This document shows positions 36,405 through 39,419 of a stretch of 64,000 bases of DNA, one piece after another (position 1 is the first letter of the stretch; the number at the start of each line of letters is the position of its first letter). Both the position numbers and the translations under genes were made by a program. The DNA lies in sequence record NC_031120.1; one strand, given 5' to 3'. The notes beneath the pieces were generated by a model. That model ran no database searches. It worked only from the letters and a program-made list of their open reading frames with translations, and was not told the DNA's origin.

Positions 36405-36998
36405 ATGTCACGTCGTAAAAAACTCCCTGGTTTTAATCCAAAGCAGAAAGCCCGTGATAGCATCACGCGCAATATGCGCGACATCAACAACGTGGAGGAA
36501 ATCTTCCGCGGTGAATCGTTAATCCTGTCTGACCGCATGGATACCGAAGGCAAAGCCCTGGAGCTGATTGAAAGCCCGGAGCTGCGCGATTATCTGACCA
36601 CCCATTTCAACCGCACGAAGAACGGTTTCGTCGGTCTGATGGCGGAGTTTACCCAAAAGCTGATTGCTATCCGTACCCCGGCCGATGCGCTGGCGTGTGA
36701 GTGGATGGACATTCTGGCTGAACAGAAATGGGACGACGTGCGTGACAAGTTTAGCTTGGCGGATGTGACCTTAACGGCCGCGTCTACTGATGCTATTTTC
36801 CTGGGTCAGGAATGTACCGCGGCCGCTATCGAACTGTTCTCGCAATATGCGTCGCGTACCAGCGCTATGCACCGTGCCATGCGCATGGGCTTGACCATCC
36901 CGGAAGTTATCCAGTTCATGGAAGCGGTGGATGACCACAATGCCCCGGCTAAAGAAGCAGCAGCCCCAGAGGCCGAAGAGGAAACTGCGAATGTCTGA
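36405..36998 (+). CDS. hypothetical protein
   Basis: 197 aa, AAGGA RBS. Confidence 0.8.
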   Translation: MSRRKKLPGFNPKQKARDSITRNMRDINNVEEIFRGESLILSDRMDTEGKALELIESPELRDYLTTHFNRTKNGFVGLMAEFTQKLIAIRTPADALACEWMDILAEQKWDDVRDKFSLADVTLTAASTDAIFLGQECTAAAIELFSQYASRTSAMHRAMRMGLTIPEVIQFMEAVDDHNAPAKEAAAPEAEEETANV

Positions 36999-38946
36999 AC
37001 AACAACTTGACCCGCGTCCGGGTATGGTGCGTCGCGACGAAAGCGCCGCCCCTGCCCCTGCGGAGTTTCAGCTCCTGTCTGATGACTACATGCGCCACCT
37101 GTCAAAGGGTGACGCTGTGGTCGAGATGCTTAAACTCAACCCCACTTTTTCTTTTGCCTTTGCCAGTGAGCAGTACGACGCTTGGCACGCAGCGAATGCG
37201 CAACCTGCATCACCGCCGGAACCGATCCCAACGGCTGCGGTTGCGCCAGCGCCGCTTGTGGAAGAGAAGGTAATCGCACAAGATCCGCCAAAGCAGCAAG
37301 TACCGGAAACCATCCGTACCCTGCATACGCATGCCGAGCCGAAACCCGCACCAACTGAACAGCGTCTGGTGCCCCAGGCTGCTCCCGATGCGCCACTTGC
37401 GGCACCGAAAGTGCCGGATGTTGACCAACCGGTGGTTGCGGCTTCTGCCCCACAGGGCATTAACTTCGGTAGCCAACCACACCGTGAAGAAATCACCACC
37501 ATGGCTGAAGACGACCCACACCGTCTATTCAGTCAGGCCGGTGAGTTGATTGGTACCTTTACCCCGCTGGCCGCGGAAGAGGAAGCGACCCGTTTCTTCT
37601 CCAATATCAAGCGTGGTAGCAAAGGCCAACCGCTGTTTGCCTCCGAAGCAGAAGCCGAGAAGTATCAGCTGCTGTCCACTGCGCTGGAATTGACCCCGCC
37701 GGTCAACACCTTAGGCCGTGCGGCGTTTGATATTGCGCTGGAGCGTACCGATACCCCGTGGACGCAGGGGATGACACTGCCAACCGGGAAGATGGTTGGA
37801 CCTGCACAGGACCGTGGTGCGGATGCTAAAGGTGCACGCGCGGCACTGCGTCGCCGCCGCCAGTCTGGTTCCCCTATCTCCCTGTGGCTGCCGTCTACCG
37901 GTATCTACGTCGGTTTCCGTGCGCCACTTGAGCGTGAGATGTGTGACTTCGATGTACGCCTGACCACTGAGACGGCGACCATCGGTATGCAGACCTATGG
38001 CCTGCTGCTGTCGTCCATGTCCGGGGTGTATCTGCGTCACATGGTGGAACATTCGCTGAACTTTGCGATTGAAACCACCTACGACTGCCAGGGTAACGAC
38101 ATCAAGACGGCACTTATCGACATCGTTGACCTCGACGATTATTGGCTGCTGATTCTCGGCCCGATTATGGCCAAGTTCCCCGCCGGTATTCCGTGGAAGA
38201 TGGTGTGCACCAAAGACGAGTGTGGTCACGAGCGTGATGTCAAGCTGAACCTGGCGCGCTGTATCCGTATGGCGGATGGCCTGTTCACCGACCTGCACCG
38301 TGCCATGAACCAACGTCAGCGTGGGAAAACCTCCGACAAGGTGATTGGTCCAGAAGACTATCAGGCTTACCGCAATGAGCTGCCGCATAACCCGGCCTCA
38401 ACCTTTAAGCATGAGCAGACTGGCCTGACCATCAACTTCGGTCGTTCTACCATCGGCGAGTATCTCGACAGCACGGATAAGTGGCTGGAAGATATCAACC
38501 GTGCGGCCACCGATGCGCTGTCCTCCAACGCCAGCGACTACGAACGCACCAACTACATCAAGTTGACTGCCGAAGTCCGTCGGCTGACCCGTCACGCCCA
38601 CCACGTCAAATCCATCGTCGTGGAAGAAGAAGTGAACGGCGAAGTGGTTGAGAACCTGGAAACCGATCCGGCGAAGATTGTCGAGATTCTGGAAGACATG
38701 TCCTCTGACCGCGTGTACGTGCTGGCCTTTGAGAACGCCCTGGCGCGTTACACTGACCTGTCGCGTCTGGCAGTGCTCGGCTACATGGGCCATGCGTGCC
38801 CAGCGTGTGGGACGACTGAAGGTGAAGAAGACGGTCCGTTCCGTGGTATTGTTACCATTTCACCGGACAGGGTTTTTTTCGCGCTATCTCGTGTGGTGTC
38901 AGAGATACAGAAAGTCTTTTTACAACAGTTCGGAAATATTGGCTAG
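36991..38946 (+). CDS. putative tail/baseplate assembly chaperone with zinc-binding motifs and Pro/Ala-rich N-terminus
   Basis: 651 aa from ATG 36991; C-x4-C-x-H and CPACG motifs reminiscent of T4 gp26-type chaperones; slippery site near the end. Confidence 0.55.
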   Translation: MSEQQLDPRPGMVRRDESAAPAPAEFQLLSDDYMRHLSKGDAVVEMLKLNPTFSFAFASEQYDAWHAANAQPASPPEPIPTAAVAPAPLVEEKVIAQDPPKQQVPETIRTLHTHAEPKPAPTEQRLVPQAAPDAPLAAPKVPDVDQPVVAASAPQGINFGSQPHREEITTMAEDDPHRLFSQAGELIGTFTPLAAEEEATRFFSNIKRGSKGQPLFASEAEAEKYQLLSTALELTPPVNTLGRAAFDIALERTDTPWTQGMTLPTGKMVGPAQDRGADAKGARAALRRRRQSGSPISLWLPSTGIYVGFRAPLEREMCDFDVRLTTETATIGMQTYGLLLSSMSGVYLRHMVEHSLNFAIETTYDCQGNDIKTALIDIVDLDDYWLLILGPIMAKFPAGIPWKMVCTKDECGHERDVKLNLARCIRMADGLFTDLHRAMNQRQRGKTSDKVIGPEDYQAYRNELPHNPASTFKHEQTGLTINFGRSTIGEYLDSTDKWLEDINRAATDALSSNASDYERTNYIKLTAEVRRLTRHAHHVKSIVVEEEVNGEVVENLETDPAKIVEILEDMSSDRVYVLAFENALARYTDLSRLAVLGYMGHACPACGTTEGEEDGPFRGIVTISPDRVFFALSRVVSEIQKVFLQQFGNIG

Positions 38947-39059
38947 ATGCCGACGACATCCCGTCCGGCACCATCATCAACGCACTGAAGCTCGACACCT
39001 CCTCGCTGTTTAAGCAGCGCAGTAGCCGACCTATCACGTATCAGGAGGCGCATGACGAG

Positions 39060-39353
39060 TTGCTCTCCACCTACGATGAGGTTATGGGCTTCGAAACCGG
39101 TGAGAACAACATTGGCCTGACAGACTTCGAGAACCCGATGATGGGTTCGCTGTACGAAATCTGGATGACCACGTATGTGCGGGAACGTATCTACGACGTG
39201 TTTCACGTCAGCTATGATGAATTCCTGAACCGTCCACGATGGGAAATGATGAAGATGCTGGAAGTGGCGAAACGACGCATTGCGGAACTTAACAAAGTGC
39301 AGAAGGACGTCATTCCAGAGGACTGGGAAAAGCAGTTGCAAGGAAAGGTATAA
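39060..39353 (+). CDS. downstream chaperone-like ORF (T4 gp51-like by eye), possibly made as a -1 frameshift extension of the upstream gene
   Basis: VFHVSYDEFLNRPRWE motif; frame open from 38826 with no ATG before 39084; the only upstream start with an RBS is TTG 39060. Confidence 0.6.
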   Translation: MLSTYDEVMGFETGENNIGLTDFENPMMGSLYEIWMTTYVRERIYDVFHVSYDEFLNRPRWEMMKMLEVAKRRIAELNKVQKDVIPEDWEKQLQGKV

Positions 39354-39355
39354 AA

Positions 39356-39384
39356 GAAGGGGCTTCGGCCCCTTTCTTTTTTTT
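39356..39384 (+). terminator. intrinsic terminator
   Basis: GGGG-CTTCGG-CCCC followed by a T run. Confidence 0.8.
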
Positions 39385-39419
39385 GTGTTGATATGACACC
39401 CGCCTTAGGAACGGAAAAA

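Follow-up and report, generated by a model that had tools for sequence, protein, structure and literature searches.

The closest described systems to the arrangement reported here are lambda gpG/gpGT and the conserved -1 frameshift in the tail assembly chaperone genes of long-tailed phages (Levin et al. 1993; Xu, Hendrix and Duda 2004, the latter cited in PMC9024508). In these, a -1 shift at an X_XXY_YYZ heptamer (G_GGA_AAG) close to the 3' end of the upstream ORF gives a short product and a rarer long product that share their N-terminal part. The upstream protein is about 140 aa, the genes lie between the tail tube and tape-measure genes, conservation across phages lies in the arrangement rather than in sequence, and no strong RNA stimulator is needed. 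In bacteria, the E. coli dnaX (tau/gamma) and IS3-family orfA/orfAB -1 frameshifts use A_AAA_AAG-type tandem-slippage heptamers with a defined upstream Shine-Dalgarno-like element and a downstream hairpin or pseudoknot to yield two products from one mRNA in a set ratio, although in dnaX the shifted product is the shorter one. A third point of comparison is T4 gp26, a baseplate hub assembly protein with a proposed chaperone or cofactor role (PMC9024508). T4 gene 26 yields a second product by internal in-frame initiation, not by frameshifting.

We analyzed a window of 64,000 nucleotides (NC_031120.1) from Erwinia phage vB_EamM_Caitlin (Machinavirus, Chimalliviridae), where the 651-codon gene gp49 is followed by a small annotated ORF, gp50. 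The original prediction was that a programmed -1 ribosomal frameshift at a T run 22 codons before the gp49 stop, with a hairpin 4 nt downstream, joins gp49 to the following frame as a tail-chaperone-like, possibly Zn-binding pair giving 651- and 787-residue products, with independent initiation at a TTG as the competing explanation. Every sequence feature it described is present where it was placed (Table 1). Its interpretation was supported only in part, as comparison with relatives favours the frameshift itself, but not the hairpin, and the tail-chaperone label only loosely.

Table 1. Coordinates of the features at the gp49-gp50 locus in the Caitlin window, with the observations that define them.
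Position	Strand	Feature	Observations
36991..38946	+	gp49, the 0-frame gene (651 aa); orthologue of phiKZ gp77 / 201phi2-1 gp136 and Chimalliviridae core gene cg18	GenBank annotation; phrog_8054 and phrog_4585; orthology notes in the 201phi2-1 record; core-gene table
36991..37857	+	N-terminal part of gp49 (residues 1-289), rich in Pro/Ala/Gln and poorly conserved	Translation; distant orthologues align only from about residue 293 onward; few invariant columns before W257
37858..38880	+	Conserved core of gp49 (residues 290-630), ending in the invariant Phe-Phe that the slippery run encodes; four near-invariant Cys (C406, C411, C603, C606)	Alignments of orthologues; AlphaFold2 model of residues 251-651 (pLDDT 80.7, pTM 0.81); BFVD fold matches
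38826..39353		Open -1 frame	Stop at 39351-39353; first ATG/GTG/TTG is the annotated TTG at 39060; first ATG at 39084
38874..38880	+	Slippery heptamer T_TTT_TTC in the 0 frame (codons GTT TTT TTC); proposed site of the -1 shift	No change in 24 distinct SPN3US-like sequences
38881..38946	+	Dual-coding overlap: 0-frame tail of the short product (21 codons plus stop) and first part of the -1-frame extension	0-frame stop TAG at 38944-38946, 22 codons after the TTC codon; per-site change (0.82) lower than in the three flanking segments (1.10-1.79), with only the heptamer (0) lower; no stop in either frame; about 30% of pairwise codon differences synonymous in each of the two frames, against 4% in the third
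38885..38907	+	Inverted repeat, TATCTC (38885-38890) and GAGATA (38902-38907), 6-bp arms and 11-nt loop	4 nt after the heptamer; role as stimulator not supported
38880..38990	+	-1-frame linker (37 codons), with no canonical start codon, running across the 0-frame stop and the so-called intergenic gap	Translation; in the gap (+1..+38), third-position periodicity in the -1 frame (20/13/35 changes) and no -1-frame stop in 24 sequences, against 9 and 10 stops in the other frames; low model confidence, as expected of a linker
38991..39353	+	Conserved helical C-terminal domain in the -1 frame, plus the stop; annotated gp50 is its last 97 codons	phrog_7580 matches residues 38-156 of the -1-frame read over positions 1-119 of 119; tblastn with the 122-aa Machina protein aligns from 38985; alignment; model
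39043..39048		AGGAGG, Shine-Dalgarno sequence	11 nt before TTG 39060
39060..39353	+	gp50 as annotated (TTG start, 97 aa); may be an additional, independently initiated, N-terminally shortened product in Caitlin	Shine-Dalgarno duplex energy -10.3 kcal/mol, against -4.7 to -7.4 for neighbouring genuine starts; among 19 tabulated genomes this strong-SD TTG occurs only in Caitlin and pEa_SNUABM_4; ChrisDB and pEa_SNUABM_9, in the same clade, have no start codon there
39356..39385	+	Intrinsic-terminator-like hairpin followed by a T run, just after the downstream stop	Pattern scan; no such site between the two ORFs, so they should share one mRNA

To determine whether the layout could be due to chance, we first scanned the ORFs of at least 150 aa in the window, which hold 22 in-frame X_XXY_YYZ heptamers. 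The gp49 heptamer is followed by the longest open -1 frame of these, at 159 codons, with the next longest at 75 and a median of 11.5. We then compared 47 distinct junctions that fall in 15 clusters with under 50% protein identity over the last 260 residues, including phiKZ-like, 201phi2-1, PCH45, Moabite, Agricanvirus, RSL2 and SPN3US. A lack of the slippery site in orthologues, or -1-frame stops after it, had been named beforehand as what would refute the idea, and this was not what we found. The downstream ORF is in the -1 frame of the upstream gene in all 47 junctions and that frame is open from the T run for 151-191 codons in all 47, while the distance from the site to the 0-frame stop ranges from 33 to 141 nt.

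A perfect T_TTT_TTY heptamer is kept in 42 of 47 junctions and in 13 of 15 clusters. The Phe-Phe motif is conserved as protein, so only the synonymous choices argue for selection on the RNA, but these run against the codon bias of the same genes. The first Phe codon is always TTT, and although the residue before Phe-Phe varies (V, L, T, G, A, I, Y), its codon ends in T in 42 of 47. Elsewhere in these genes Phe is TTC 560 times and TTT 272 times, 36 of 40 other Phe-Phe pairs begin with TTC and none is TTTTTT, and only 28% of third positions are T. Four rows of the table behind this comparison, for Caitlin and three close relatives, were not used because a second, imperfect T run nearer the stop had been picked. 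The five imperfect heptamers (three G_TTT_TTT, one A_TTT_TTC and one G_TTT_TTC) all have a canonical start within 10-36 codons of the site, and it is possible that some lineages rely on separate initiation.

No canonical start codon is conserved for the downstream frame. The stretch from the site to the first ATG/GTG/TTG is 87 codons in a phiKZ-type genome, 80-103 in one metagenomic cluster, 79 in PhiEaH1, 70 in Deimos-Minion and 62 in Caitlin, and the start-less 85 codons of the phiKZ-type genome are homologous to the 201phi2-1 -1-frame read (E = 2e-9). Where an ATG does sit near the N-terminus of the domain (Machina clade +39, Seoulvirus +45) it has no Shine-Dalgarno, and GenBank annotators chose a different start in almost every record. 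Coding signatures extend upstream of every annotated start, and in Caitlin the family profile of the downstream domain starts 23 codons before the annotated TTG.

The coding signatures in 24 SPN3US-like sequences point the same way. Upstream of the heptamer only the 0 frame shows periodicity and the -1 frame holds 35 stops, whereas both frames are constrained in the overlap and the 38 nt "intergenic" gap evolves as -1-frame coding sequence. The downstream domain shows strong purifying selection, with 3036 synonymous against 1369 non-synonymous pairwise codon differences.

We found no support for the predicted hairpin as a stimulator. It is absent from the minimum-free-energy fold of 38881-38960, and that stretch folds no better than shuffles (z = +0.31; z = -1.04 for 161 nt). 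Pairing was counted over 22 relatives, and among the 15 that are distinct there were 0 compensatory changes. Although 80% of cells pair, the changes that do occur break pairs, and the repeat lies in dual-coding sequence, which explains its conservation and means that it says nothing about structure. Across lineages the folding energies of the 60 nt after the site range from -0.8 to -19.6 kcal/mol, and no common structure, upstream motif or conserved Shine-Dalgarno-like element was found, so that the elements that define the dnaX and IS3 sites could not be shown here. Some phage frameshift sites also lack a stimulator.

Taken together, we suggest that gp49 and gp50 form one recoded gene, a reading to which we assign a probability of roughly 0.7. 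In this model, most ribosomes stop at the end of gp49 to give the 651-residue protein, while a fraction slip back one base at the heptamer as both Phe-tRNAs re-pair on the T run and continue in the -1 frame. The product would be a 787-residue protein with the same first 630 residues followed by 157 residues (the codons of 38880-39350), namely a linker of about 37 residues and a helical domain of about 120. The arrangement would be ancestral to the nucleus-forming jumbo phages (Chimalliviridae) and, by analogy with gpG/gpGT, would set a fixed ratio of a short and a long form of a non-virion assembly factor that may act in baseplate-hub assembly, as proposed for T4 gp26. The site, the open frame and the family-wide conservation and coding signatures are established by the sequences, but that ribosomes rather than the RNA polymerase make the shift, its efficiency, the existence of the long protein and the function of either form are inferred from sequence alone. 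We also found no independent sign that the two parts work as one chain, as no natural single-ORF fusion turned up among 48 close homologues of 389-706 aa or among the hits of a search of 1.84 billion representative proteins. One long hit from a metagenomic contig does read through in one frame, but its frame change does not coincide with the T run and the contig is short and of low quality, so it was set aside.

Of the alternatives, the one that survives best, though we consider it unlikely, is that there is no recoding and the downstream domain is made only by separate initiation at start codons that differ between lineages, canonical or not, or by re-initiation after the upstream stop, with the T run kept for Phe-Phe and the open -1 frame a by-product. 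The strong AGGAGG-TTG pair in Caitlin fits this view, as do canonical starts within 40-70 nt of the upstream stop in several lineages (that of Moabite with a fair Shine-Dalgarno, -5.9), the nearby starts in lineages with imperfect heptamers, and the small separate proteins of 80-165 aa that gene callers predict everywhere. However, it does not explain the constant -1 relation, the absence of -1-frame stops from the T run onward, the start-less but homologous coding stretches of 62-103 codons, the -1-frame periodicity upstream of the Machina and Seoulvirus ATGs or their lack of a Shine-Dalgarno, or the synonymous choice of TTT and of a preceding NNT. Initiation at TTG 39060 would also remove the 23 most conserved N-terminal residues of the domain, and this start is not conserved even within Caitlin's own clade, though it is plausible as the source of an additional product in Caitlin.

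Somewhat less likely still is transcriptional slippage, in which the RNA polymerase adds one U in the T run and a minority of mRNAs carry the two frames fused, with nearly the same protein outcome. Middle and late genes of these phages are read by a phage-encoded multisubunit enzyme, the site is a homopolymer of 7 T's in Caitlin and phiKZ-type genomes and 8 in Deimos-Minion and RSL2, one added base gives the same frame as a -1 ribosomal shift, no stimulatory structure was found, and all the comparative evidence fits this reading equally well. On the other hand, runs of 7-8 are short for efficient polymerase slippage, which is usually seen at 9 or more, five junctions have only 5-6 T's, and the run always sits so that it forms an X_XXY_YYZ heptamer in the 0 frame, although the conserved Phe-Phe also forces this. 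A homopolymer miscall or a decaying downstream frame is effectively refuted, even though such runs are classic sites of sequencing error, since the two-frame layout recurs in 47 distinct sequences from many laboratories, decades and platforms with runs of 5 to 8 T's, the 0-frame tail after the run is itself conserved and under selection, which a miscalled single ORF would not show, and the downstream domain is under purifying selection.

We consider it somewhat more likely than not that all nucleus-forming jumbo phages share this as an ancient recoding event in cg18, with the small, inconsistently annotated downstream ORF being the C-terminal domain of a frameshift product rather than a gene of its own. 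The family would then have arrived independently at the gpG/gpGT logic in an unrelated, Cys4-containing, gp26-like protein encoded away from the tail genes. While -1 frameshifting in tail chaperone genes is established, full-text searches and several supplements gave no report of a frameshift in these phages, no peptide, ribosome-profiling or transcript evidence for one and no data on phiKZ gp76/gp77, although most subscription journals lay outside the search and an earlier report cannot be excluded; the "gp77" of the Goslar and PCH45 papers refers to other genes. No record we could search annotates the frameshift. Chimalliviridae are among the most studied phages at present, for their phage nucleus, defence evasion and use in therapy, and cg18 is one of their roughly 68 core genes and has no assigned function. 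A conserved frameshift would correct the gene models of phiKZ, SPN3US, Goslar, RAY, PCH45 and more than a hundred related genomes, add a hidden domain to a core protein, and explain why the ORF downstream of gp77 has a different start in almost every record. It would also extend the rule that tail morphogenesis factors are made in two forms by a -1 frameshift to a protein family and a phage family where it was thought absent, give a testable lead to the function of gp77, and be a natural frameshift site on a plain T run with no evident stimulator, read by host ribosomes that these phages modify.

The likeness to gpG/gpGT is one of logic and not of homology, with no sequence or fold similarity to these chaperones. 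The conserved layout would give two products sharing an N-terminal part, and the product is probably a non-virion morphogenesis factor, but the upstream protein is 651 aa with a Cys4 motif, and the genes lie among RNA polymerase, helicase and DNA polymerase genes in Caitlin, with the same context in relatives. The Zn-binding idea rests only on the four near-invariant cysteines. Searches of Pfam, NCBIfam, PHROGs and PDB sequences with single proteins and with alignments gave nothing annotated, including any tail-chaperone family; as in all our searches and models, the two parts were used separately. None of 10 diverse orthologues matched any relevant Pfam family at E <= 0.1 or an annotated PHROG, and no Pfam, NCBIfam or PHROG profile links gp49 to T4 gp26. 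A PDB fold search with the gp49 model gave no significant match (best E = 0.72), and a fold search with the downstream domain returned only orthologous uncharacterized jumbo-phage proteins.

gp49 is about three times longer than T4 gp26, and some GenBank annotators call its orthologues "T4 gp26 like". It appears to be non-virion, though the evidence is indirect: Goslar gp81 is not mentioned in the main text of the Goslar virion paper, and in the 201phi2-1 record gp136 and gp135 carry no mass-spectrometry note, whereas gp138 and gp139 do. The predicted fold of gp49 residues 251-651 weakly resembles BFVD entries named "Baseplate hub assembly protein, bacteriophage T4-like", "Baseplate hub assembly chaperone" and "Baseplate hub subunit", names that are automatic annotations, with Foldseek returning about ten such hits (E 3e-7 to 1e-2, probability 0.97-1.00, modest TM-scores of 0.44-0.58 normalized to the target, and rmsd 8-10 A).

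The region is 100% identical to Erwinia phage vB_EamM_Caitlin (NC_031120; genus Machinavirus, family Chimalliviridae), and coordinates in the window equal genome coordinates. The two genes of interest, gp49 and gp50, are both annotated as hypothetical and lie among RNA polymerase subunit, helicase and DNA polymerase genes. Examination of the sequence confirmed the original observation of a slippery heptamer in the 0 frame near the end of gp49, followed by a long open -1 frame, and the inverted repeat and AGGAGG described with it are also present where they had been placed. The 0-frame codons are GTT TTT TTC, 22 codons before the TAG stop, and the -1 frame holds no ATG, GTG or TTG before the annotated start of gp50. 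The ORFs of at least 150 aa in the window contain 22 in-frame slippery heptamers, and this one is followed by the longest open -1 frame, at 159 codons compared to 75 for the next longest and a median of 11.5. A second, imperfect T-rich stretch is found closer to the gp49 stop in the Caitlin clade only, but it is not a perfect heptamer and is not conserved in the Machina clade.

Coordinates of features in and around gp49 and gp50 of phage Caitlin
Feature	Coordinates	Description
gp49	36991-38946	Upstream gene, 651 aa
N-terminal region of gp49	36991-37857	First ~290 residues
First cysteine pair	38206-38223	C406/C411
Second cysteine pair	38797-38808	C603/C606
Open -1 frame	38826-39353	
Slippery heptamer	38874-38880	T_TTT_TTC in the 0 frame
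-1-frame read used in searches	from 38880	
Inverted repeat	38885-38890 and 38902-38907	
Second T-rich stretch	38914-38920	In-frame TTT TTA preceded by C, 30 nt before the gp49 stop
gp49 stop	38944-38946	TAG
tblastn alignment with the 122-aa Machina protein	from 38985	
phrog_7580 match	from 38991	From residue 38 of the -1-frame read
AGGAGG	39043-39048	11 nt before the TTG at 39060 (whole element 39043-39062)
gp50 as annotated	39060-39353	TTG start, 97 aa
Terminator-like hairpin	39356-39385	GGGGC-TTCG-GCCCC core with a T run, directly after the downstream stop

The downstream gene is longer than annotated. When the -1 frame was read from the heptamer as a piece of its own, it matched the whole profile of phrog_7580 (positions 1-119 of 119), beginning 23 codons before the annotated TTG, and tblastn with the 122-aa Machina protein also aligned from upstream of that start. 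An alignment of eight Machinavirus genomes showed the heptamer and its surroundings to be almost invariant, while the flanks differ by about 25%. We then compared 17 SPN3US-like phages of five genera (Machinavirus, Erskinevirus, Seoulvirus, Derbicusvirus and Wellingtonvirus). In all 17, the heptamer lies exactly 72 nt before the last base of the upstream stop and the -1 frame is open from before the heptamer to the end of the downstream ORF. No start codon is conserved among them: the Machina clade has an ATG at +39, Seoulvirus has an ATG at +45, phiEaH2 has a TTG at +45 and Asesino a GTG at +12, while the Caitlin clade, CR5, EarlPhillipIV and pEa_SNUABM_11 have nothing before +87 to +138.

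To determine whether this arrangement extends beyond the SPN3US-like phages, the conserved C-terminal half of gp49 was used as a query and found orthologues throughout the family (200 records). Notes in the 201phi2-1 record identify the gene as the orthologue of phiKZ gp77, 201phi2-1 gp136 and EL gp47. In each of the distant lineages examined, namely a phiKZ-type genome (KTN4), 201phi2-1, PCH45, Moabite, Deimos-Minion, RSL2, Xoo-sp14, JM-2012 and PhiEaH1, a T_TTT_TTY heptamer sits in frame on the same invariant Phe-Phe, the downstream ORF is in the -1 frame, and that frame is open from the heptamer onward. Adding IMG/VR contigs gave 47 distinct junctions in 15 clusters of under 50% identity. 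The -1 frame is open for 151-191 codons in 47 of 47 junctions and the heptamer is perfect in 42 of 47, and the distance from the site to the 0-frame stop varies from 33 to 141 nt. The five imperfect sites (three G_TTT_TTT, one A_TTT_TTC and one G_TTT_TTC) belong to three 201phi2-1-like IMG/VR contigs (L042, L044 and L045), PA1C and Noxifer, and all have a canonical start 10-36 codons after the site, which hints that some lineages have moved toward separate initiation of the downstream domain.

Since Phe-Phe is invariant as protein, only the synonymous choices are informative about selection on the RNA. Elsewhere in these same genes Phe is encoded by TTC twice as often as by TTT (560 against 272), 36 of 40 other Phe-Phe pairs begin with TTC and none is TTTTTT, and only 28% of third positions are T. 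At the motif, however, the first codon is always TTT, and the preceding codon ends in T in 42 of 47 cases although the residue it encodes varies (V, L, T, G, A, I, Y).

Coding signatures were examined in 24 distinct SPN3US-like sequences. Upstream of the heptamer, changes pile up at 0-frame third positions (24/21/49) and the -1 frame holds 35 stops, while the heptamer itself never changes. The 66-nt overlap has a lower rate of change (0.82 per site) than any other segment apart from the unchanged heptamer, neither frame has a stop there, and about 30% of pairwise codon differences are synonymous in each of the two frames, against 4% in the third, as dual coding predicts. The 38-nt "intergenic" gap after the 0-frame stop varies most (1.79 per site), but it does so with -1-frame periodicity (20/13/35) and has no -1-frame stop, compared to 9 and 10 stops in the other frames, and so behaves as a loosely constrained, translated linker. 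The downstream domain shows strong -1-frame purifying selection. In the phiKZ-type genome, the 85 -1-frame codons that precede the first canonical start are homologous to the 201phi2-1 read (E = 2e-9).

The comparative evidence for a conserved recoding event is strong. We consider recoding of some kind likely, with ribosomal slippage the favoured mechanism at a probability of about 0.72. The slippery site, the open -1 frame, their conservation and the coding signatures are read directly from the sequences, whereas the shift itself, the ribosome as its agent and the role of the products are inferred from these comparisons without experimental data. The original prediction of a -1 frameshift joining two tail-chaperone-like ORFs is partly supported: the arrangement would work like gpG/gpGT, but it is not a member of that family. 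The proposed hairpin just downstream of the heptamer is not part of the minimum-free-energy fold, and the region folds like its shuffles. Over 15 distinct relatives it shows no compensatory change and substitutions break pairs, and across lineages neither a common downstream structure nor a common upstream motif appears. This weakens the case for an efficient shift but not for a low-level one; the lambda G/GT site works at a few percent without such elements.

Separate initiation of the downstream domain, which had been raised as the competing explanation, is unlikely to account for its production alone, though it may contribute in some lineages. Genuine starts in the window have anti-Shine-Dalgarno duplex energies of -4.7 to -7.4 kcal/mol, whereas the Machina ATG (+39) scores -0.2, the Seoulvirus ATG (+45) +1.9 and the phiKZ-type ATG (+219) -2.6. 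The TTG of Caitlin scores -10.3, the strongest Shine-Dalgarno match near the locus, and an extra, shortened product from an internal start is therefore plausible in Caitlin and pEa_SNUABM_4. The AGGAGG arises from the conserved Gln-Glu-Ala codons, and in the Machina clade the same residues are encoded without a Shine-Dalgarno. However, this TTG is absent from ChrisDB and pEa_SNUABM_9, and its use would remove the most conserved N-terminal motif of the domain. The terminator-like hairpin follows the downstream stop and no such site separates the ORFs, so the pair ends a transcription unit. Slippage by the polymerase instead of the ribosome is somewhat less likely still. An artefact is very improbable; one short metagenomic contig (L065, Logan contig SRR24775682_366466), 93-96% identical to Caitlin, does read from the gp49 frame into the downstream frame as a single 312-aa ORF (P0050), but the frame change does not coincide with the T run and the contig has further discrepancies, making an assembly or read error most likely.

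No Pfam, NCBIfam, annotated PHROG or PDB sequence match was found for either part. An AlphaFold2 model of gp49 residues 251-651 is confident (pLDDT 80.7, pTM 0.81), although confidence falls to 51, 43 and 29 over the last three 10-residue blocks (residues 381-401 of the model, just past the Phe-Phe), and 385-401 is the only segment below 50, covering most of the 0-frame tail. The model has no significant PDB neighbour. In BFVD it matches orthologues first and then about ten proteins named T4-like baseplate hub assembly protein, chaperone or subunit (E 3e-7 to 1e-2, TM to target 0.44-0.58), in agreement with the "T4 gp26 like" notes of some annotators. A chaperone or cofactor role has been proposed for T4 gp26 (PMC9024508), but the link to gp49 is only a fold-level lead from a predicted structure. 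The two cysteine pairs of gp49 are nearly invariant across the family, with RSL2 lacking the second pair, and on sequence alone it is possible that they form a zinc site. The N-terminal region of gp49 is rich in Pro, Ala and Gln, differs in length between relatives and has no counterpart in distant orthologues (about 500-600 aa), and is probably a disordered extension specific to SPN3US-like phages. The -1-frame piece is modelled as a low-confidence linker followed by a helical domain that resembles only its own orthologues.

Full-text searches, reviews or core-genome papers and several supplements gave no mention of frameshifting in these phages, though most subscription journals fell outside the literature searched, and we therefore regard the finding as probably, not certainly, new. 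None of the 28 annotated records examined joins the two ORFs in one CDS. Instead, the annotated start of the ORF downstream of the gp77 orthologue differs in almost every record, with offsets relative to the upstream stop ranging from -135 to +219 nt, and two records (Wellington gp52 and Deimos-Minion gp272) annotate it as overlapping the upstream gene. The core-genome study lists phiKZ gp077 as core gene cg18, "hypothetical protein", and does not list the downstream ORF as core (supplement of PMC10299810), even though it is present and in the -1 frame in all 15 clusters examined here; inconsistent gene calls are the probable reason. In the PA1C record the downstream ORF is described as similar to "PHIKZ076.4", which implies that a re-annotation of phiKZ has already added or renamed an ORF in this interval.
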